A stretch of DNA of 64,000 bases from Azolla caroliniana (taxonomy: Eukaryota; Plantae; Polypodiophyta): positions 310,001 through 374,000 of the forward strand of contig JBHGNT010000027.1 of the NCBI GenBank assembly GCA_043228905.1, in the 5' to 3' direction. A program made the translations under genes and the position numbers. This document shows, piece by piece, positions 26,025-56,827 of the stretch. The notes beneath the pieces were generated by a model. It saw nothing but the letters and a program-made list of their open reading frames with translations, made no database searches and was not told the origin of the DNA. Position 1 is the first letter of the stretch. Each line of letters opens with the position of its first letter.

Positions 26025-26156
26025 AACTACTTAAAGCAGCACGCACAAATAGGAAACCCAAAAAATAAGATGCAGGTGAGAAGAGGGATACCCTTGTAGA
26101 TCTGGGAAATAAAGATGATAAAGAAAGAAAGAATAGGTGCATGCTGGCCCAAGTAG

Positions 26157-26187
<31 letters not shown>

Positions 26188-26225
26188 CTTCGGGATGGGG
26201 GCTTGATGAATCCCCCATCCCAACC

Positions 26226-26313
26226 GGAGGTATGGCTGAGCGGCTTAAGGCATTGGTTTGCTAAATCAACATACAATCTTCTTGTATCATGGGTTCGAAT
26301 CCCATTTCCTCCG
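26226..26313 (+). tRNA. trnS: tRNA-Ser(GCU), copy 1
   Basis: GGAGGTATGGCTGAGCGG...TTGGT-TTGCTAA-ATCAA...TTCGAATCC. Confidence 0.95.
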
Positions 26314-26678
26314 AGCGAGTGCGAAGCACGAGCGATGCGACAGTGACGTGATGGAAGAAACCCATACATTGCTTTTTGGGAATGCGGCAGTGGCCTGCCG
26401 GGAGAGACCTAGCCGGTAAGGGAGTGCTAGTTTTTGCTTCTTTTCTTTTCTTTTCTTGCGCGCTTGCTGCTTTTAAGGTAACATCAATGCTGCTTTAATA
26501 ACCAGTAGTGCAAGTTCATTTGGACGGACAGCGGGAAATGCGATCAATAACACGTGGAGTTGGGTCTGCGGGCAAGCAAACATTCCCCCGCACAAGTAGA
26601 TTGAATAGGAGTTGGCCGGCTTCTTTTTTTCTAAAATAAATTCCGATTCGCTAGAGAGAGATCAATTGCTTGCTTGCT

Positions 26679-26752
26679 TGCGGGGTGGAGTAAATGGCCA
26701 ACTCGTCAGGCTCATGACCTGAAGACTGCGGGTTCAAACCCTGCCCCCGCAC
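26679..26752 (+). tRNA. trnfM: tRNA-fMet(CAU), copy 1
   Basis: GCGGGGTGGAG...TCAGG-CTCATGA-CCTGA...TTCAAACCC, plant mitochondrial initiator type. Confidence 0.9.
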
Positions 26753-27304
26753 TACATGTTGTCAACAGTAAAAAAGCAAATGAAGATTATTGTATAATAA
26801 TCCATGCTTAAGAATGGGAAACTAACGTGACTATTCATATTGTCAATTCGTTATCATTCGTGTTGTCAATGAGACGGTGACATTCCAATGAAGCGGTTTT
26901 CATCATCATGAAGGCCTTCATGCATGCATGAAGAACCTGTTTGGTTTGATGAACATGCCGGTTCATCATGCTTGCTGTTTAAAATACTCGTTAGGTGGTT
27001 CCGCTTTTCTTTTGGGGAAGGCGTGCGTTTCAGGCTTGCAGGGAAAAGTGCCATTTCCGAGTTCAAAGATTGCTGCTTTAAAGTGGAAAGAAAAGTGCAA
27101 AGCATCTTCTTGCCAGTGATTCATCAAGATTGCCGCCGGCTCGGTTTAAAGTGAAAAGAAAAGTGCTGCTTTGCTTTGCTTTGCTGGATTCGCAGATTAT
27201 GGCCAGAAGATGATATTGCCTTCTTGCATGATCCTTCTGAATTTTACCAACGGAATTTCGAAATTCCAGCATTCAATTCTTTCCGCAATCTGAGCCGCAT
27301 TAAA

Positions 27305-27326
27305 GATTATCGTATAATAATCCATG
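27305..27326 (+). promoter_or_regulatory. candidate CRTA-type promoter ATTATCGTATAATAA upstream of rrn18
   Basis: Related motifs recur upstream of several genes (see findings). Confidence 0.4.
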
Positions 27327-27927
27327 AATATTCAGGCCTTCTTGAAAGTTCAAAAGAAGAACTTTGGTAGCCATTTATATTACACTTTTTACCGCTTCTT
27401 CTTCTTCCGCAGTGCAGTTTTCTTGCGCTTCATGAAGAAAAGGTGCTGTTTGAAATTGTAGCTTGAATCTTATCGGAAAACTAACTCTAGGCCTTCTTGA
27501 TGAACAGCTATGGATAATACGGCGGAAGTTGCTTGCGGGGAAGAACCAAGGTGGTGGATGAACCCGCTGCTTCATCAGCGCGATGAAGACGATTAACGCT
27601 ACTTATCGGCTACGGTAAAGTCAGACGGCCCGATGGGGGAGTTGGTAGCAGAAGCTAGACAATTGCGGCGCGGCCCAACAAGAAAAGAAAAGAAGCGGAT
27701 TGACGTGGCCGCAGTCATTCGACCTCCCCATGCTATCTGAGTGGATGCACCTCACCCTTCCACTGGCTATGCGGGGACTGGACCAATGTGATCTCGCCTT
27801 GACGTTGGCGGTCCGGCTTATGGAGAAGAGACCAACTGTGGTGTGGCCTTCTCCAACCAAGAGTCACACCAAAATTCAAATATTGCACATGAATTCATCA
27901 ACCTGCCTCGTATGGCAGAAATTGACC

Positions 27928-28101
27928 AAAAAACCGAGTTTGATCCTGGCTCAGAATGAACGCTAGCGATATGCTTAACACATGCAAGTCGAACGTTGTT
28001 TTCGTCTATAGAACAGTTGAAGACAAAGTGGCGAACGGGTGCGTAACGCGTGGGAATCTGCCAAACAGTTTGGGCCGAATCCCAAAGAAACGAAAGCAGC
28101 T

Positions 28102-28137
<36 letters not shown>

Positions 28138-28245
28138 GCTTTTCGATAAAGCTAAAAAGCGCTGTTTGATGAGCCTGCGTAGTATTAGGTAGTTGGTTGG
28201 GTAAAGGCTGACCAAGCCGCAGATGCTTAGCTGATCTTTTCGGAC

Positions 28246-28283
<38 letters not shown>

Positions 28284-28439
28284 GTAGGGAGGCAGCAGTG
28301 GGGAATATCGGACAATGGGCGAAAGCCCGATCCAGCAATATCGCGTGAGTGAGTGAAAAACGTCGCGTTAGCGAGGAAGGGCAATGCCGCTTGTAAAGCT
28401 CTTTCGTCGAGTACGCGATTATGACAAGACTCGAAGAAG

Positions 28440-28475
<36 letters not shown>

Positions 28476-28715
28476 GACGGGGGGGGCAAGTGTTATTCGG
28501 AATGACTGGGCGTAAAGGGCACGTAGGCAGTGAATCAGGTTGAAAGTCAAAGGCGCCAGCTCAACTGGCGGAATGCTTTCAAAACCAATTTACTCGAGTG
28601 GGACAGAGGGGAGTGGAATTTCGTGTGTAGGGATAAAATCCGGAGATATACGAAGGAACGCCGAAGTAGCGAAGGCAGCTTTCTGGGTCTCTACTGACGC
28701 TGAGGTGCGAAAGCT

Positions 28716-28751
<36 letters not shown>

Positions 28752-28871
28752 TGCCGTAAACGATGAGTGTTCGTCCTTGGTCCGCGGATCGGGGGCCCAG
28801 CTAACGCGTTAAACACTCCGCCTGGGGAGTACGGTCGCAAGACTGAAACTCAAAGGAATTGACGGGGGCCT

Positions 28872-28904
<33 letters not shown>

Positions 28905-29011
28905 ACAACGCGCAAAACCTTACCAGCCCTTGACATATGAACACTTGACGTATGAACACTTGACATATGAACCGGTGTGCTTGTCCTTAACGGGATGAAA
29001 CGAAAATTCAT

Positions 29012-29050
<39 letters not shown>

Positions 29051-29486
29051 CGTTTTTGGTTAACTCCTATAACGAGCGAAACCCTCGTTTTGTGTTGCTA
29101 AGATATGCTGCTCCCAGAGGATCAATGTCATCATTCACCCTCGGCAAGCAGGAACATAGAACATGGGCTGGCTTCCGACGAACTTGAGGTTCCGACGAGC
29201 GAGCCGGTGGTAAGTGAGCCGCTTCATCGGTACCTGCCCATGAATCTGTGTTCAGTCAGCGGTTAGCCAGGATTGATGACACTCCCTCTGTGCCGATGTT
29301 GCACTCACAAGAGACTGCCCGTAGTTCTACTATGGAGGAAGGTGAGGATGACGTCAAGTCCGCATGGCCCTTATGGGCTGGGCTACACACGTGCTACAAT
29401 GGCAATTACAATAGGAAGCAGGGCCGTAAGGCGGAGCGAATCCAGAAAGATTGCCTCAGTTCGGATTGTTCTCTGCAACTCGAGAA

Positions 29487-29536
<50 letters not shown>

Positions 29537-29755
29537 TGTACTCGGGCCCCGTACACACCGCCCGTCACACCCTGGGAATTGGTTTCGCCCGAAGCATCGA
29601 CCAGAGATCACCCATTACTAAAGTGTTCCATGCCGCCGTTGAGTGTGGCCCATTTTGGTATTGGTGGTCTTCTTGGCGCATATCACGGTTGGGTCAGTGA
29701 CTGGGGTGAAGTCGTAACATGGTAGTCGTAGGGGAACCTGTGGCTGGAGGGAATC
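27928..29755 (+). rRNA. rrn18: mitochondrial small-subunit rRNA, copy 1 (ends approximate)
   Basis: AGTTTGATCCTGGCTCAG, GTGCCAGCAGCCGCGGTAA, AAACTCAAAGGAATTGACGG and AAGTCGTAAC, with a plant-mitochondrial V7 expansion and no anti-SD tail. Confidence 0.97.
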
Positions 29756-30110
29756 TCAAAGGGAAGCGCCAGCGTCCTTTCGTTAACTGTACTGACTTGA
29801 TGAAGTTAATTCCAAGTTGGGTAAATGCCGGCCCGGCCCGGCCCGGCCCGGCCCGGCCGGATGAAGCGCTATGCGCGAGGAGGAAGCGCTTCTTCATGAA
29901 GCGCATGAAGGGATTGAAACCGTAGACCAATCGCGGATGAAGCGGTTAACAGTTGAGCTACCAGCGCGGGAAGGGAAAATGTACGGTTAGTATCATATAC
30001 ATTCTTTGACTTTCGAGCCGCCTCATGACCTGTGAGACGTTAACTATTCAAAGACCCCAGCTGCTTGCTGCTTTCTTCGAGATTTCATGAACCTCGCTAA
30101 AGCCTAAAGC

Positions 30111-30143
<33 letters not shown>

Positions 30144-30554
30144 TGGAGTTCGAAAAACGTATAGATCGAAAGACGACGACAAAGCGAAGGCCTTCATTGC
30201 ATTGCTGCGACTTGCTTGCTGCAAGGACATAAGACTTTCTTTCTAGGCCCTTTTCCCTTCCCGCTACATCCTTCTTTGTACCTGTAGAGGCAGGGTCGAA
30301 TGGTGGCTCTGCAGTTTGGCTTGATTGCTCTTGAATTGGAGAGATACGAACAGAAAATTTTCATCGATAGCGTTCCATGAATTATCGTATATGAAACGAA
30401 TTGAACACAAATGATCCATCACTCGCATTCTACTAGGTGCTTGAGCGGGGCAAAGTCTTTGCGCGCGCATAGAAGGCCCCGCGCTTCGGCCGATTTGTAT
30501 TATAGGAATGATCTCTTTCTTCATAATACCCCTCCTTTCGGAAACGAAACTTAG

Positions 30555-30625
30555 GCGGATATAGATTAACGGTAGATTATCTGCCTTCCAAGCAGAGGAT
30601 ATGGGTTCGACTCCCGTTATCCGCA
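30555..30625 (+). tRNA. trnG: tRNA-Gly(UCC)
   Basis: GCGGATATAG...TCTGC-CTTCCAA-GCAGA...TTCGACTCC. Confidence 0.93.
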
Positions 30626-31639
30626 ACTGACAAATAGGACAAAGGATGGCTACAGATCATGGCTATGGGAAAACCAAACCCATTTCTACCGAGGGACTGC
30701 GGTCAAGCGAAGGCTTACGAATTGGGACGAAGGTTTGGACTGAAGGGAGGAGTTACGTAGCTTAGACTGAAGAGAACAAGCACAGGAAGAAAGGAAGAGC
30801 ATGCCGTAAAAGCAGCATGGTTGAGGGTCGATCTTGTCTTCCCTTTAACTGGTTCAATTGGCGTGGGAGGGGGCGGACCCCGCCCCGACGTATAGGATAA
30901 AAAATGACTTAATTGAAGACAATTTTCCATAACCAAGTTGTTGTTACTTTTAGCCCTCTACATCCCCAGGAGCTGAGCCAACAGATGAATTCTCAGAACA
31001 AAATGATAATTCATTCTCGCTCGAGATCAGACTCATCAAACCGTAAGCGGTATGCTTTCGTGGTTGCCTTAATGGGGTTAATTCATTCTCCACAATATTG
31101 CATTGCGGACTTTCCTGTAGTCCCATTGGGATAGGGGAGCGCCTCGCGATAGTGCCTGCTACCCTATCCCAGTATCATATTTCCTGCTAGCTGAACTGAG
31201 GTCACTAATTGCTTGCGGCGTTGTTGACTTGATTTCGGTTTTGTAGGACGTTAGAAGCGCCTGAGAGCATAGGTTTGATCTAACGTCATCTTCTAGGACA
31301 GAGGAGATTTCTGTTAGCTGCGAAAGTTAAAGTTGTTGCAGAAAACTCCCTCCAACTTACCGCCCAGCCGCTCTCTGCGGGTGTGACTGTTTATAACCTC
31401 CCAGTGTATCAAGCCCAAATTCCAGGGCTGTGCTGGGCTCTTTTTCTCATCTGGAGCCGCTTTCGCCATCGCAAAGAATGGCAAAGGGACGCATAGTAAG
31501 GTGACGAATAATACTGGTTCTTGCTTGATTTCTGGTGCCGCTCTGAAGAGGTGAGAGACAGCAACTAGCATCCTTTCTAGTGGGTATTCTTTTTTCTTTT
31601 TTGAATTTTCCTTATTTTACTGGCTTTTCTGCTGGGTTC

Positions 31640-32317
31640 TCAAGCCTTTTTCGAATGAATGACTATTTTCGTGACCAATTAGCAAAATGGATTTGTGAAC
31701 CACACGGAATCATTATTTACCAGAATGAGATAAATAACTAACCTATGTAATCCCTCTAGGAGAGTAGAATCCACCAGGAATGCAATAAATATTCATGATC
31801 AATTAGCTTCAAATATAGCTATGAAATCTTTACGTGCATTCGGTATAACTAAACTATCTGAAATTTAGCATGTTATCAGTCCTTCGAAATATCTTTACAT
31901 CTTTAAAAAACGTAGACTAGAATGCCGCCACGTGGATGAATACTTAAAGCGTTCTTCATGTTTCATATGTTCCCAATTGATTAAGAAACCACCAATCCAT
32001 TTGGAATTGATATGACTTTAATTGGTCCTTCTCGCCATTTTTTTCATTGTGTCATCGTACAAAAGATCAATATTCACCAACAATAAATGGCCCTCCTTAC
32101 GAATGATAGATCCAATCGCATTACAAGCAATCTTCAAGAATAAAAGTGTTTTTTCCAAATCAATAATAGCCCTTCCGCGTCTAAATCCGTATAAATATCT
32201 TTAATAATATGGAGTTGGGGGTCCCTAATAGCCCGAATGTGCGCTTGTATTCGGTAATCTTTAAAAAATGACTTTCTTTTCCTTTTTGGAATAATACTCT
32301 TTCTTTCCTTTTTCCAT
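31640..32317 (-). CDS. rps2: ribosomal protein S2 (possible chimeric upstream start at 32431; 3' end approximate)
   Basis: AH.G.(Q)...YLYGFRRGRAIIDLEKTL...KWIGGFL.NW.HMK...EAN....I.FLVDS...NNDS. Confidence 0.88.
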
Positions 32318-32467
32318 TTCATACGGTAGAGCGGCGCATAATATGCTTTCTTTCTTCGATGTTCAAAATCTATGTATCCGTTTGAAAACTGATAGAACAG
32401 TAGCAAATTATTCAAGTGGACTGCAAGCCATGATAAAGTTCAGTTCAGGCAGGGTTTCATAAAAATC

Positions 32468-33453
32468 TGAGATTGGTTCTTTATAATCATGGCTGTTTAA
32501 AAAGAAGTGAAAAGGGGCAAGTAATCCCATATACCAATATAGCGAAAAGTGACCGAAGCATGATGCAGGTTCGGTTGAAAGGAAGAACCCGCTAGCCCGC
32601 CCTGAACAAGGGCAAAGCATTCCGTAGGTATATAATCTAATGTGCACTTTCCGCATCCTACAGGACTTGAACCTGTGACCTTCAACTTAGAAGGTTGTTG
32701 CTCTATCCGACTGAGCTAAGGATGCTGTGCATTACAAACACTTCTAGGCTTTTCAGTTAAGTCAGGTAAAACTTGCTTGCCTTTTCGCCGAAAAAGCAAT
32801 AGAAAAAAGTTATGAATACAAGAAAGAAGAAACCGCAACCGCAGCCCTGGATGATTCTTCCTGAAGTAAGTTCTAAAGAATGCCCTAACCAGATTGATTT
32901 ATCCATTTCACGTAATTCGGTCGGTTACGTGTTTTTCATAGCACCTTTCATGTCGTGCCACATAAAGATGGATTACCTAAAATCAGTTGAATTCCTAAAT
33001 CATGAAAACAACTTTCACACGACGGCATCAAACGGGGCAAATCATCCATCTAGGAAGAACAGGATGTGGTTCCCAAAGAATGCTTTGACACCAGTGTTTC
33101 CTTCCTGTACTCCAGTGTTTTCGGAGCATCCTAATGGTTACACAAAATGGTCAAAACCTTAAAGACTTTGGGATTATTAGAAACGAATACTTCCCACACG
33201 TGTTCTCTAGGAGAGATTAGTCTCCCGCGAGTGCCTAAAGAATAGACAATCGACACTTTCTTTTTCAACGAAGGGAGTCCTTCACATTCCCATAGCCCTT
33301 TCTCTCTAGCTTTCTCTTGCTATACCGTCGCCGTTGCTGTTCTCAACCCTTTCATAATGTTACGCGGGCAGGAGAGCACTGAGGTAAAGTAACGGACGAG
33401 GGGGCACTATGATGGGTGGAAGGGGCGGGCCGGTGATTTTCAAGAGCGGATAC
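32468..33453. repeat. 986-bp inverted repeat, partner at 55806-56791
   Basis: Contains trnR(ucu) and an identical 116-aa ORF on opposite strands. Confidence 0.95.
32652..32725 (-). tRNA. trnR: tRNA-Arg(UCU), copy 1
   Basis: GCATCCTTAGCTCAGTCGGATAGAGC...CAAC-CTTCTAA-GTTG...TTCAAGTCC. Confidence 0.93.
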
Positions 33454-36946: not shown

Positions 36947-37605
36947 TGCCATGAATACCCCATCCACGATTTGATCGAAAAAAAAACCTAAAGCCGCCGC
37001 CTTCAGCAGCAAGTCGACAATTAATTTGGTAAATGAATTCACGATTCTTCAATACTTTCACCCGCCCTATTGACTGGCTCGTTCAGGCATGATTCATCCG
37101 GAAACGGTGGCTTTGCGATTCGCACGAGTGATGCAAGGATTATCGTATAATAACAATCCCTGGGATGCCCGTGATGAGAACCTTGGCTTGCTCCTTTCTT
37201 TTGGTGTAGGAATGGCTTTAGAGCAAACCCCCCCAGCCGCCGTACTCGGGTATGCGATCTTCCAACGTTGTGAATGAGAAGTTTGCTTCATATGCACAAA
37301 ACTAGTTGAGAAGATTGGCCCATCAATCGAACCCACCACGGCCCCAGAACCTTTTCGCTTTGGCGCGGATGAAGCGGTTGCCAGCACGCATTCCAAAGCC
37401 GCCCATCAAGGAACCCTAACGAAAAGCATATAGAATCTTTGGGTAGGGATCCTTAATTGATGATAAGGCTGCCGGGATACGGCGGAATCTCATGACCGGC
37501 CTCGACGCGGTTTCGCTTAAGGTTTCAGCCCTCCGATTAAACAGCCATGATTATAAAGAATCAATGCTCACTACGATTTTTATGAAACCCTGCCTGAACT
37601 TTATC

Positions 37606-38241
37606 ATGGCTTGCAGTCCACTTAAATAATTTGCTACTGTTCTATCGGTTTTCAAACGGATACATAGATTTTGAACATCGAAGGAAGAAAGCATATTATG
37701 CGCCACTCCGGACTATCCATTTTAATTCCTGTGGTTTTCGAGGTATCATATCAATATACGTCTTGGAATTCCGATCGATACTCGCGGAGTTGATTATCCT
37801 TCTCAAAAATGAAGATTCGGAGTAGTCTATAACTCACCAAGCATTTGATATAACCCATGCATTCGTGTACGAATTGGTGTAGATGAAATCACTTCTGCAA
37901 GTTTGGTAATCAGTATATCCCTATCAGCCGGCCGGTGGGAGCGAGAAGTGCGGGATACGTCTGGTTTACATTCTCCTAATTATCCTGATTTACGCCGTAC
38001 ATTAACCGATTACGGTTTCGAGGGTCATTTATTATGAAAAGACTTCCTCTTAAGTGGATACGTGGAAGTACGTCACGATGATCTGGAGAAATGTGTGGTT
38101 CCTGAACTGATGGAGATGGTTCAAGAATTTTGCTATTCTGATTTGGCCAGTCCTTGGCGACTAATGCCGCCCAGATCCTTTTGTAATTTTGCCAGTCCTT
38201 GGCGACTAACGCCGCCCAGATCTTTTAGTACTAACCGCCGA
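37606..38241 (+). CDS. nad9: NADH dehydrogenase subunit 9 with an atp6-like N-terminus (stop by CGA edit at 38239 uncertain; genomic TAG at 38340)
   Basis: K(W)IHRF...GVDYPSQK(R)RF.VVYN...WEREV.D...DLRR.LTDYGFEGH.L(R)KDF.LSGYVEVR...ASPW. Confidence 0.9.
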
Positions 38242-38340
38242 GGCGGCTCGGAAGCCCTCCGAATCCGAAATCAGTTCATTGTAAACCGACGAGCGGTCGG
38301 GATAAAGAAAGAAAGAATAGGTGCATGCTGGCCCAAGTAG

Positions 38341-38371
<31 letters not shown>

Positions 38372-38409
38372 CTTCGGGATGGGGGCTTGATGAATCCCCC
38401 ATCCCAACC

Positions 38410-38497
38410 GGAGGTATGGCTGAGCGGCTTAAGGCATTGGTTTGCTAAATCAACATACAATCTTCTTGTATCATGGGTTCGAATCCCATTTCCTCCG
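38410..38497 (+). tRNA. trnS: tRNA-Ser(GCU), copy 2
   Basis: Identical to 26226-26313. Confidence 0.95.
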
Positions 38498-38862
38498 AGC
38501 GAGTGCGAAGCACGAGCGATGCGACAGTGACGTGATGGAAGAAACCCATACATTGCTTTTTGGGAATGCGGCAGTGGCCTGCCGGGAGAGACCTAGCCGG
38601 TAAGGGAGTGCTAGTTTTTGCTTCTTTTCTTTTCTTTTCTTGCGCGCTTGCTGCTTTTAAGGTAACATCAATGCTGCTTTAATAACCAGTAGTGCAAGTT
38701 CATTTGGACGGACAGCGGGAAATGCGATCAATAACACGTGGAGTTGGGTCTGCGGGCAAGCAAACATTCCCCCGCACAAGTAGATTGAATAGGAGTTGGC
38801 CGGCTTCTTTTTTTCTAAAATAAATTCCGATTCGCTAGAGAGAGATCAATTGCTTGCTTGCT

Positions 38863-38936
38863 TGCGGGGTGGAGTAAATGGCCAACTCGTCAGGCTCATG
38901 ACCTGAAGACTGCGGGTTCAAACCCTGCCCCCGCAC
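38863..38936 (+). tRNA. trnfM: tRNA-fMet(CAU), copy 2
   Basis: Identical to 26679-26752. Confidence 0.9.
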
Positions 38937-40111
38937 TACATGTTGTCAACAGTAAAAAAGCAAATGAAGATTATTGTATAATAATCCATGCTTAAGAATG
39001 GGAAACTAACGTGACTATTCATATTGTCAATTCGTTATCATTCGTGTTGTCAATGAGACGGTGACATTCCAATGAAGCGGTTTTCATCATCATGAAGGCC
39101 TTCATGCATGCATGAAGAACCTGTTTGGTTTGATGAACATGCCGGTTCATCATGCTTGCTGTTTAAAATACTCGTTAGGTGGTTCCGCTTTTCTTTTGGG
39201 GAAGGCGTGCGTTTCAGGCTTGCAGGGAAAAGTGCCATTTCCGAGTTCAAAGATTGCTGCTTTAAAGTGGAAAGAAAAGTGCAAAGCATCTTCTTGCCAG
39301 TGATTCATCAAGATTGCCGCCGGCTCGGTTTAAAGTGAAAAGAAAAGTGCTGCTTTGCTTTGCTTTGCTGGATTCGCAGATTATGGCCAGAAGATGATAT
39401 TGCCTTCTTGCATGATCCTTCTGAATTTTACCAACGGAATTTCGAAATTCCAGCATTCAATTCTTTCCGCAATCTGAGCCGCATTAAAGATTATCGTATA
39501 ATAATCCATGAATATTCAGGCCTTCTTGAAAGTTCAAAAGAAGAACTTTGGTAGCCATTTATATTACACTTTTTACCGCTTCTTCTTCTTCCGCAGTGCA
39601 GTTTTCTTGCGCTTCATGAAGAAAAGGTGCTGTTTGAAATTGTAGCTTGAATCTTATCGGAAAACTAACTCTAGGCCTTCTTGATGAACAGCTATGGATA
39701 ATACGGCGGAAGTTGCTTGCGGGGAAGAACCAAGGTGGTGGATGAACCCGCTGCTTCATCAGCGCGATGAAGACGATTAACGCTACTTATCGGCTACGGT
39801 AAAGTCAGACGGCCCGATGGGGGAGTTGGTAGCAGAAGCTAGACAATTGCGGCGCGGCCCAACAAGAAAAGAAAAGAAGCGGATTGACGTGGCCGCAGTC
39901 ATTCGACCTCCCCATGCTATCTGAGTGGATGCACCTCACCCTTCCACTGGCTATGCGGGGACTGGACCAATGTGATCTCGCCTTGACGTTGGCGGTCCGG
40001 CTTATGGAGAAGAGACCAACTGTGGTGTGGCCTTCTCCAACCAAGAGTCACACCAAAATTCAAATATTGCACATGAATTCATCAACCTGCCTCGTATGGC
40101 AGAAATTGACC

Positions 40112-40285
40112 AAAAAACCGAGTTTGATCCTGGCTCAGAATGAACGCTAGCGATATGCTTAACACATGCAAGTCGAACGTTGTTTTCGTCTATAGAACAG
40201 TTGAAGACAAAGTGGCGAACGGGTGCGTAACGCGTGGGAATCTGCCAAACAGTTTGGGCCGAATCCCAAAGAAACGAAAGCAGCT

Positions 40286-40321
<36 letters not shown>

Positions 40322-40429
40322 GCTTTTCGATAAAGCTAAAAAGCGCTGTTTGATGAGCCTGCGTAGTATTAGGTAGTTGGTTGGGTAAAGGCTGACCAAG
40401 CCGCAGATGCTTAGCTGATCTTTTCGGAC

Positions 40430-40467
<38 letters not shown>

Positions 40468-40623
40468 GTAGGGAGGCAGCAGTGGGGAATATCGGACAAT
40501 GGGCGAAAGCCCGATCCAGCAATATCGCGTGAGTGAGTGAAAAACGTCGCTAACGCGAGGAAGGGCAATGCCGCTTGTAAAGCTCTTTCGTCGAGTACGC
40601 GATTATGACAAGACTCGAAGAAG

Positions 40624-40659
<36 letters not shown>

Positions 40660-40899
40660 GACGGGGGGGGCAAGTGTTATTCGGAATGACTGGGCGTAAA
40701 GGGCACGTAGGCAGTGAATCAGGTTGAAAGTCAAAGGCGCCAGCTCAACTGGCGGAATGCTTTCAAAACCAATTTACTCGAGTGGGACAGAGGGGAGTGG
40801 AATTTCGTGTGTAGGGATAAAATCCGGAGATATACGAAGGAACGCCGAAGTAGCGAAGGCAGCTTTCTGGGTCTCTACTGACGCTGAGGTGCGAAAGCT

Positions 40900-40935
<36 letters not shown>

Positions 40936-41055
40936 TGCCGTAAACGATGAGTGTTCGTCCTTGGTCCGCGGATCGGGGGCCCAGCTAACGCGTTAAACAC
41001 TCCGCCTGGGGAGTACGGTCGCAAGACTGAAACTCAAAGGAATTGACGGGGGCCT

Positions 41056-41088
<33 letters not shown>

Positions 41089-41195
41089 ACAACGCGCAAA
41101 ACCTTACCAGCCCTTGACATATGAACACTTGACGTATGAACACTTGACATATGAACCGGTGTGCTTGTCCTTAACGGGATGAAACGAAAATTCAT

Positions 41196-41234
<39 letters not shown>

Positions 41235-41670
41235 CGTTTTTGGTTAACTCCTATAACGAGCGAAACCCTCGTTTTGTGTTGCTAAGATATGCTGCTCCCA
41301 GAGGATCAATGTCATCATTCACCCTCGGCAAGCAGGAACATAGAACATGGGCTGGCTTCCGACGAACTTGAGGTTCCGACGAGCGAGCCGGTGGTAAGTG
41401 AGCCGCTTCATCGGTACCTGCCCATGAATCTGTGTTCAGTCAGCGGTTAGCCAGGATTGATGACACTCCCTCTGTGCCGATGTTGCACTCACAAGAGACT
41501 GCCCGTAGTTCTACTATGGAGGAAGGTGAGGATGACGTCAAGTCCGCATGGCCCTTATGGGCTGGGCTACACACGTGCTACAATGGCAATTACAATAGGA
41601 AGCAGGGCCGTAAGGCGGAGCGAATCCAGAAAGATTGCCTCAGTTCGGATTGTTCTCTGCAACTCGAGAA

Positions 41671-41720
<50 letters not shown>

Positions 41721-41939
41721 TGTACTCGGGCCCCGTACACACCGCCCGTCACACCCTGGGAATTGGTTTCGCCCGAAGCATCGACCAGAGATCACCCATT
41801 ACTAAAGTGTTCCATGCCTACGTTGAGTGTGGCCCATTTTGGTATTGGTGGTCTTCTTGGCGCATATCACGGTTGGGTCAGTGACTGGGGTGAAGTCGTA
41901 ACATGGTAGTCGTAGGGGAACCTGTGGCTGGAGGGAATC
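40112..41939 (+). rRNA. rrn18: mitochondrial small-subunit rRNA, copy 2 (ends approximate)
   Basis: Same conserved motifs as copy 1. Differs at 40551-40554 and 41819-41820. Confidence 0.97.
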
Positions 41940-42294
41940 TCAAAGGGAAGCGCCAGCGTCCTTTCGTTAACTGTACTGACTTGATGAAGTTAATTCCAAG
42001 TTGGGTAAATGCCGGCCCGGCCCGGCCCGGCCCGGCCCGGCCGGATGAAGCGCTATGCGCGAGGAGGAAGCGCTTCTTCATGAAGCGCATGAAGGGATTG
42101 AAACCGTAGACCAATCGCGGATGAAGCGGTTAACAGTTGAGCTACCAGCGCGGGAAGGGAAAATGTACGGTTAGTATCATATACATTCTTTGACTTTCGA
42201 GCCGCCTCATGACCTGTGAGACGTTAACTATTCAAAGACCCCAGCTGCTTGCTGCTTTCTTCGAGATTTCATGAACCTCGCTAAAGCCTAAAGC

Positions 42295-42327
<33 letters not shown>

Positions 42328-42546
42328 TGGAGTTCGAAAAACGTATAGATCGAAAGACGACGACAAAGCGAAGGCCTTCATTGCATTGCTGCGACTTGCT
42401 TGCTGCAAGGACATAAGACTTTCTTTCTAGGCCCTTTTCCCTTCCCGAGATTGAGTGATGAGAGATCGGGTGCCAACCAAGCGGCTTAGGCGCTAATCGA
42501 TAGCTTACGCCGGCCCTCAACCATTACTGCTGGGGATGGCCCACGC

Positions 42547-47095: not shown

Positions 47096-47363
47096 ACGGC
47101 CGAAGAAGCGGTTTTCATCGGCATTCTACCTGCCAAAAAGAAAGCAGAGACTTCTGATTCCGCGATTTTGGGCGAAGCGGAAGATGTTGTCAATGAATAA
47201 AGGTACAGCTTGCTCGTTGACATCTCGGAAATATTCTGCCATTGTTGGGGCTAGGTTGAGCCAACTCTCATACGAGCTCTTCAACAGAGCTAGTCCGAAA
47301 AATTGATAAACGTTAAGAACAACCCTCTTTCATGCATGTTGGAACAAAACCCTTCAATTCATC

Positions 47364-48116
47364 ACGGCTTACAGTCTACCGGAATAACCTGCCATTATTC
47401 TATCGATTTCCATCCATATAGGAAATCCGTATCTTTTATTTATCAATTCCTCTCCATCTATGTCACCCACTACCAGTTTAATCCCGCTCCTAGTTCACTT
47501 GGTGACCTCGAATGGAGGACACTTAGTACTGAATGCTTGGTAATCCCTAGTGGAGATGACTTATGATTTCGTGCCCAATCTAGTGAACGAATAAATTAGT
47601 GGCGTTTCGAAATAATAGTCTTCTCTCCCGATCCTCGTTACTTTTACCTTTCCATTATTTCGTAATTTGTAAGGTATGGTACTTTATAGTTTTATGGTAA
47701 TAAGTCATTCTATTATTATTTTGGGTTCTCTATTCTCTCTTTCTCTTGGAACTATCGTAGTGGGGTCTTAAACACATGGGCCTCATCCTTTCAGTCTCTT
47801 ATTACTGCCGGGTGTACCTCCACCGTTAGCGCCTTTCCCAGTATTTTCGGAGTTAATCCTCTATCGTTTTCGTGCACTAAGCTTAGGAATATGTTTATTT
47901 GCTAATATGATGGCTGGTTATAGTTCAGTCAAGATTTCGAGTGGCTTTGCTCGGACCATGCTATCCATGAGGGGTATCTTGCTATTAGCACATCTCGCTC
48001 TTCTTTCGATCGTATTTGCATCAACTGGTTTAGAATCAGGTGTAGTTATTTTATAAGCTTATGTCCCTATAATCCCGATTCGTATTCATTTGAATGATGC
48101 AATAAACCTTCATTGA
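47364..48116 (+). CDS. atp6: ATP synthase subunit 6 (ACG start)
   Basis: (M)AYS..E(Q).AII...IHIGN...NAW(Q)SLVEM...ALSLGI.LFANMMAG...LNDAINLH*, 250 aa. Confidence 0.94.
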
Positions 48117-55805: not shown

Positions 55806-56791
55806 GTATCCGCTCTTGAAAATCACCGGCCCGCCCCTTCCACCCATCATAGTGCCCCCTCGTCCGTTACTTTACCTCAGTGCTCTCCTGCCCGCGTAAC
55901 ATTATGAAAGGGTTGAGAACAGCAACGGCGACGGTATAGCAAGAGAAAGCTAGAGAGAAAGGGCTATGGGAATGTGAAGGACTCCCTTCGTTGAAAAAGA
56001 AAGTGTCGATTGTCTATTCTTTAGGCACTCGCGGGAGACTAATCTCTCCTAGAGAACACGTGTGGGAAGTATTCGTTTCTAATAATCCCAAAGTCTTTAA
56101 GGTTTTGACCATTTTGTGTAACCATTAGGATGCTCCGAAAACACTGGAGTACAGGAAGGAAACACTGGTGTCAAAGCATTCTTTGGGAACCACATCCTGT
56201 TCTTCCTAGATGGATGATTTGCCCCGTTTGATGCCGTCGTGTGAAAGTTGTTTTCATGATTTAGGAATTCAACTGATTTTAGGTAATCCATCTTTATGTG
56301 GCACGACATGAAAGGTGCTATGAAAAACACGTAACCGACCGAATTACGTGAAATGGATAAATCAATCTGGTTAGGGCATTCTTTAGAACTTACTTCAGGA
56401 AGAATCATCCAGGGCTGCGGTTGCGGTTTCTTCTTTCTTGTATTCATAACTTTTTTCTATTGCTTTTTCGGCGAAAAGGCAAGCAAGTTTTACCTGACTT
56501 AACTGAAAAGCCTAGAAGTGTTTGTAATGCACAGCATCCTTAGCTCAGTCGGATAGAGCAACAACCTTCTAAGTTGAAGGTCACAGGTTCAAGTCCTGTA
56601 GGATGCGGAAAGTGCACATTAGATTATATACCTACGGAATGCTTTGCCCTTGTTCAGGGCGGGCTAGCGGGTTCTTCCTTTCAACCGAACCTGCATCATG
56701 CTTCGGTCACTTTTCGCTATATTGGTATATGGGATTACTTGCCCCTTTTCACTTCTTTTTAAACAGCCATGATTATAAAGAACCAATCTCA
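55806..56791. repeat. 986-bp inverted repeat, partner at 32468-33453
   Basis: Reverse-complement match. Confidence 0.95.
56534..56607 (+). tRNA. trnR: tRNA-Arg(UCU), copy 2
   Basis: Identical to 32652-32725. Confidence 0.93.
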
Positions 56792-56827
56792 CTACGATTT
56801 TTATGAAACGAAGAAAGACTTTTTCTT

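Follow-up and report, generated by a model that had tools for sequence, protein, structure and literature searches.

Where does a gene begin when the front end of another gene stands before it in the same frame? The question is raised by rps2 in the 64,000-nucleotide stretch of DNA analysed here (the window). The rps2 body (31577..32317, minus strand) opens at a candidate start codon, ATG 32317, and another, ATG 32431, lies exactly 38 codons ahead of it in one frame, as a first-pass annotation had pointed out. That annotation regarded the arrangement as an editing switch between a seven-codon upstream open reading frame (uORF) and an extended RPS2. Our comparisons lead to a different account, in which rps2 probably uses the expression signals of nad9. 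We put at about 0.5 the probability that it captured the 5' end of nad9 together with the start codon, in which case its product would carry a constant N-terminal extension.

The window belongs to the mitochondrial genome of a fern: it holds group II introns, 22 tRNA genes and two small-subunit rRNA copies, and its genes are interrupted by editable stops. Many independent metagenome assemblies contain nearly identical sequence, and of the sequences retrieved, those that are closest while still distinct come from leptosporangiate ferns; the viral and bacterial sequence collections that were searched gave no match. A comparison of two samples showed that small indels are frequent in the non-coding DNA of this genome (24 gaps vs 4 mismatches over 6.5 kb), many of them in microsatellites. 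A 4.1-kb direct repeat (26117-30263 and 38301-42447, 99.9%), carrying trnS, trnM and a small-subunit rRNA gene, begins at the 3' end of the nad9 open frame.

The junction of nad9 and rps2

Between the two candidate starts the frame is interrupted only by TAA 32410 (codon 8, 32408..32410) and TGA 32365 (codon 23, 32363..32365), and the intact nad9 of this genome (37606..38340, plus strand, ATG 37606) has a TAA and a TGA at the same codons 8 and 23. An inverted duplication of nad9 stands ahead of rps2: 32329-32500 matches 37537-37708 at 91.5% over 177 nt (E 2e-67), far beyond chance. The duplicated part had been described as the nad9 leader and about 33 codons, which is confirmed as far as it goes, but the extent was understated, as the block covers at least 32739-32329 and includes trnR-UCU. 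Codons 1-34 of the rps2 copy show 4 substitutions relative to nad9 in 102 nt and no indel; the 69-nt proximal leader (32432..32500), with a motif conserved upstream of nad9 and nad4L in ferns, differs from that of nad9 by three indels (-1, -4 and +5) with a net change of zero.

Three gene sources, atp6, nad9 and rps2, are joined in one frame, as had been proposed. Codons 1-16 on the rps2 side (32384..32431, minus strand) represent an atp6-derived start inherited from fern nad9, and codons 17-34 (32330..32383) are nad9-derived; four junction codons (32318..32329) then separate the end of nad9 homology from ATG 32317, so that the non-nad9 sequence before this ATG amounts to 12 nt only. Codon 18, given as tryptophan in the earlier translation, is CGG in the DNA, a C-to-U site and no stop. 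The seven-codon uORF does exist in the unedited sequence, but the frame is also open upstream to ATG 32656, giving an 82-codon ORF as well. We considered the ATGs at 32656, 32620 and 32530, and the leader's own ATG, as conserved starts and rejected them, because their frames vary among ferns and 32656 falls within the tRNA gene. The 11-nt stretch that ends with ATG 32317 (32326-32316) equals codons 37-40 of a Ceratopteris-type nad9 and differs from the nad9 of this genome (matches at L119:4150-4165 and L120:10150-10161), which may be chance.

An assembly error at the nad9 and nad4L repeats is very improbable as the origin of this junction. It is true that none of the independent contigs retrieved runs across it, and that neighbouring short-read contigs stop inside a 1-kb repeat. 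A mis-join, however, would yield an identical copy, and the copy before rps2 differs from nad9 by the four coding substitutions and three indels. When the substitutions are polarised, two are derived in nad9 (codons 7 and 27) and two in the rps2 copy (codon 14, silent, and codon 34); the rps2 copy retains the ancestral E7 and K27, at both of which nad9 has changed. In addition, the upstream order matches that of another fern. Since substitutions fall on both branches and ancestral bases are retained, the rps2-side copy is, to judge from this pattern, an evolved locus.

Two captures in succession

The atp6 origin proposed for codons 4-16 is well supported. In Asplenium NAD9, 8-10 of the 13 residues at positions 4-16 are identical to those of four algal ATP6 starts (three of the four donors confirmed as PF00119), compared with 1-3 of 13 for canonical NAD9 (Psilotum, Lycopodium, hornwort, moss, Cycas and an angiosperm-type sequence), and from residue 17 onward the similarity switches to NAD9. 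The ATP6-start score was reached by none of 2000 shuffles. The same type of nad9 start is found in Asplenium (P0205), Ceratopteris, a long-tailed fern nad9 (L119), another fern (L123, L124) and Deparia, for which the codon-8 TAA of the genomic DNA can be read from a published nad9 primer (PMC5932399); it is absent from Psilotum and Lycopodium. As the fusion occurs in several ferns, it is old and common to the sampled leptosporangiate ferns, and the seven-codon uORF is therefore simply the unedited state of ordinary fern nad9. An earlier idea of ours, that the fusion is peculiar to this genome, came from one Haplopteris edit label and was overturned by the nad9 starts of the other ferns.

Comparison among these ferns shows that, in their ancestor, the first ~16 codons of atp6 replaced the nad9 start in exact register. 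The register was kept, as the edited codons 18 and 110 of Haplopteris nad9 have their counterparts at the same codon positions in this genome. Asplenium nidus NAD9 (P0205) reads Q at codon 8 and R at codon 23, so that both stops are predicted U-to-C sites, and 47 of the 60 differences between this protein and the nad9 of the window are repairable by C/U changes. The intact nad9, with its atp6-type start and six in-frame stops, has the same sequence in independent assemblies (L001, L081-L087). The atp6 of this genome is not within the window; a weak match at 47358-47412 was tried and rejected, since it sits in other sequence, which we take to be plastid atpB-like. A PDB search with the Asplenium NAD9 start gave no match. 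On an angiosperm-type mitochondrial contig (L003:1700-1900) an ATP6-like start motif runs into unrelated sequence; this may be a further atp6 chimera.

The nad9 gene has some further peculiarities. Near its 3' end there is a 45-nt tandem duplication (38133-38222), and editing of a CGA at codon 185 could create a stop. Conserved prolines at nad9 codon 16 (37651-37653) and at rps2 codon 177 (31789-31787) are phenylalanine codons in the DNA, each of which would need two U-to-C edits to read proline. Pteridium reads have been reported to match Azolla nad9 at the 5' end only (bioRxiv 10.1101/2022.12.23.521604, section 15), a pattern that an atp6-derived start, or a nad9 front end retained on another gene, could explain. 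We found no earlier report of an atp6-derived nad9 start in the searched literature, and it is the most solid new point of this study. Carried by an essential gene across several families, it could serve as a shared marker of leptosporangiate ferns.

The second capture concerns the DNA farther upstream. On a contig from another fern (L123), trnR(UCU) is followed by a spacer of 151 nt, the leader and a complete nad9, colinear with 32739-32329 of the window at 87%. The counterparts in the window are trnR(UCU) at 32652..32725 and a spacer from the tRNA to the leader motif at 32501..32651 (both minus strand), the latter of the same length and about 92% identical. From this colinearity, the block before rps2 is the original front end of nad9, that is, its ancestral upstream locus of trnR-UCU, spacer, leader and 34 codons. 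Intact nad9 shares only the last 69 nt of this ancestral DNA, its own leader (37537..37605, plus strand), with different DNA farther up; the homology stops at 37537, right at the 5' edge of the leader motif. The first-pass annotation had spoken of an expression cassette recruited serially. Serial capture stands, but the order of events has to be revised: leptosporangiate ferns have the first capture in common, and what stands ahead of rps2 is no recent short duplicate.

The same unit stands before a further gene. The 1-kb repeat at 32454..33453 (minus strand) recurs inverted before nad4L (55806..56809, plus strand, again with trnR(UCU); ACG 56828), 99.6% identical. In other ferns (24 contigs, some conspecific) the same leader motif stands ahead of nad4L, and contigs that extend far enough show trnG(UCC) sequence before it; here a 1-kb copy of the trnR unit takes the place of trnG(UCC). 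A single old transcription unit now fronts both rps2 and nad4L. A trnG(UCC) that, with its flanks, matches the sequence ahead of nad4L in other ferns lies at 30302-30678, downstream of rps2 and apart from nad4L. Several unannotated ORFs lie upstream of nad4L on fern mitochondrial contigs (L099:1803-4623, L098), and one upstream ORF of 252 aa presumably resembles a rolling-circle replication protein.

The leader motif itself is ~25-30 nt long and common to nad4L and nad9 across ferns (L090-L116, L120-L124), with copies in the window at 56759-56809, 37537-37589 and 32454-32500. Its distance to the start is 66 nt in the rps2 copy, nad9 and nad4L here and 55 to 66 nt among ferns, and the motif is a candidate protein-binding or processing site. 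A consensus scan across 31500-33000 found nothing above chance. The possibility that the leader was taken from nad4L within this genome was rejected, as other ferns carry the motif before both genes.

Start codon and in-frame stops of rps2

In the course of events that we propose, recombination in this lineage joined rps2 to the copy of the nad9 front end, with the break at about the site of rps2's former start, which would have been lost. The gene would then be transcribed through trnR from nad9's old upstream unit, and tRNA cleavage (RNase Z) near 32651 would probably set the 5' end of its mRNA. Codons 8 and 23 would be edited by the same factors as in nad9, as ordinary obligatory edits among the twelve stops in the frame and with no control point, and translation from 32431 would give an RPS2 with a constant 38-residue extension. 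The L123 trnR-nad9 colinearity and the four substitutions since separation, two per branch, support the capture. For annotation, it follows that rps2 may begin 38 codons earlier than expected.

Four signs favour the start at 32431, each weak and none decisive. The 102 nt of captured codons have no indel whereas the 69-nt leader has three (p ~0.07). The leader indels sum to zero, so that the 66-nt distance from motif to ATG is kept, although this may be luck given the variation in that distance among ferns. Of the nine Haplopteris rps2 edit labels, five fit a start at 32335, including both strongly predicted leucines, as against four with 32317; 32335 lies inside the nad9 piece, two codons ahead of the junction, and if the Haplopteris start maps there the break would have removed the native rps2 start. 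Finally, only 12 nt of non-nad9 sequence precede 32317. It is possible, if doubtful, that the captured block supplies only a promoter, a tRNA-defined 5' end and an untranslated leader, and that RPS2 is made from 32317 by internal ribosome entry, as has been proposed for plant mitochondrial polycistronic mRNAs (PMC6159524). The frame match would then be chance, for which the prior of an in-frame, stop-free join across the junction is ~0.28, and edits in the nad9 piece would be bystander events. ATG 32317, 18 codons ahead of the conserved S2 core, offers a start without any extension, and with two substitutions on the branch of the copy an indel-free 102 nt is not strongly unexpected. On the other hand, any native rps2 initiation signal farther than 12 nt upstream is gone, while 32431 keeps a complete nad9 context that is in use, and the start at 32431 is also somewhat favoured by the uneven distribution of indels and by the Haplopteris labels.

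These arguments presuppose a working gene, and the rps2 body might instead be dying or dead, with the junction a neutral recombination product and the real S2 coming from elsewhere. In a single frame of 246 codons rps2 has ten in-frame stops of its own before TAG 31579 (TGA 31642 may be the natural end), and the Haplopteris rps2, annotated with its own edited ACG start, needs no stop removal (PMC10027690). Just two of the ten align with Q of E. coli S2, which is a distant reference. The gene is reported absent from Blechnaceae mitogenomes and so is dispensable in some ferns, and Haplopteris has pseudo-nad9 fragments. Nevertheless, we consider decay unlikely. There is no frameshift in the 246 codons despite the frequent small indels in non-coding DNA, and a stop content of ~4% is normal for working fern ribosomal-protein genes, as in Haplopteris rpl5 with nine stops edited at 56-90% (PMC10027690). 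Against E. coli S2, rps2 aligns in one frame over 223 positions with 53 identities, and 20 of its mismatches are fixable by C/U editing where 9.8 +/- 2.8 are expected (p 0.001). A second rps2 was not found within the window, nor was rps2 found on the fern contigs retrieved.

What, then, of the switch? If U-to-C editing of codons 8 and 23 were regulated, it could in principle toggle between the short uORF and extended RPS2, or between two RPS2 isoforms; more specifically, partial editing of the rps2 copy at codon 8 or 23 would set the ratio of NAD9-tagged RPS2 (from 32431) to short RPS2 (from 32317). The anatomy permits this, with two in-frame ATGs and two editable stops between them. In ferns, stops are not always removed efficiently (one nad4L site is edited at 19%), and translation of partly edited mRNAs does occur (PMC6159524). 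Both stops indeed lie at inherited nad9 editing positions, and the sequence upstream of them is nearly unchanged: in the 25 nt before each stop the two copies differ only at -3 (first) and at -25 (second), and the difference at -3 could lower editing at codon 8 on the rps2 copy alone. Still, we give a switch of either form very little credence. The start and the codon-8 stop are not peculiar to rps2, being present in nad9 both here and in Deparia, and the two stops came with the nad9 piece. Every RPS2 also requires nine to ten other stop edits, in a group of plants where stop removal is routine and mostly efficient (233 of 530 reverse edits in Haplopteris remove stops; PMC10027690), and nothing marks codons 8 and 23 as special compared with the other ten stops or their nad9 twins. 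Because rps2 has ten more stops and nad9 has the same codon-8 stop, these two sites appear to call for routine editing and form no special gate. Neither uORF control, or editing-gated uORFs, in plant mitochondria nor a precedent for editing-gated start-codon choice in a plant mitochondrion was found in the searched literature. If real, such a choice would link the production of S2 to factors that edit the mRNA of a complex I subunit, and of the readings weighed here only this unlikely one would be a new mechanism. The rps2 and nad9 copies, nearly identical but for the single base at -3 of one site, are a natural test of whether moved U-to-C sites stay active as moved C-to-U sites do.

Comparison with known systems

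The pieces before and within rps2 stand in one frame, and the donor nad9 is still present at 37606, diverged at 4 of 102 nt, as in other chimeric genes. The closest parallel may be bobt of Silene vulgaris, an atp1-cox2-unknown chimera co-transcribed with cob, in which editing is kept in the copied piece (PMC3288002). As in bobt, a gene's front end and upstream signals are fused in frame to other sequence in a multi-part mosaic that retains its editing positions. Since editing signals travel with the chimeric pieces in bobt, we infer that nad9 factors would also edit the rps2 copy. Unlike in bobt, the partner that follows is a ribosomal-protein gene, apparently complete; the earlier of the two fusions sits in an essential gene and has become fixed in many fern families; and U-to-C editing is needed to open the frame.

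Plant mitochondrial genes with borrowed 5' leaders and N-termini were reportedly described by Hazle and Bonen in 2007 (Mol Biol Evol 24:1101). In both cases a native gene is fronted by duplicated upstream sequence of another, and several genes share a leader; here, by contrast, nad9, nad4L and rps2 all have the one leader, which brought 34 codons with it to rps2. No report of such a leader with captured codons was found for ferns in the searched literature. The tRNA-directed mRNA 5' ends proposed for Arabidopsis rps3 and ccmFC (PMC1920247) likewise involve a tRNA gene on the same strand, which here lies ~220 nt upstream of the start, although in our case the 5' end is a predicted one. In Haplopteris, reverse editing removes TAA and TGA stops where Q and R are to be read, and some of these lie near the start: rps11 has seven among its first 20 codons (PMC10027690). 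The two predicted sites are of the same sort and also close to the start, but unlike those of Haplopteris they sit in a captured piece on a second gene. The locus thus seems to be of a known kind, the capture of another gene's 5' end in a plant mitochondrion, here twice over.
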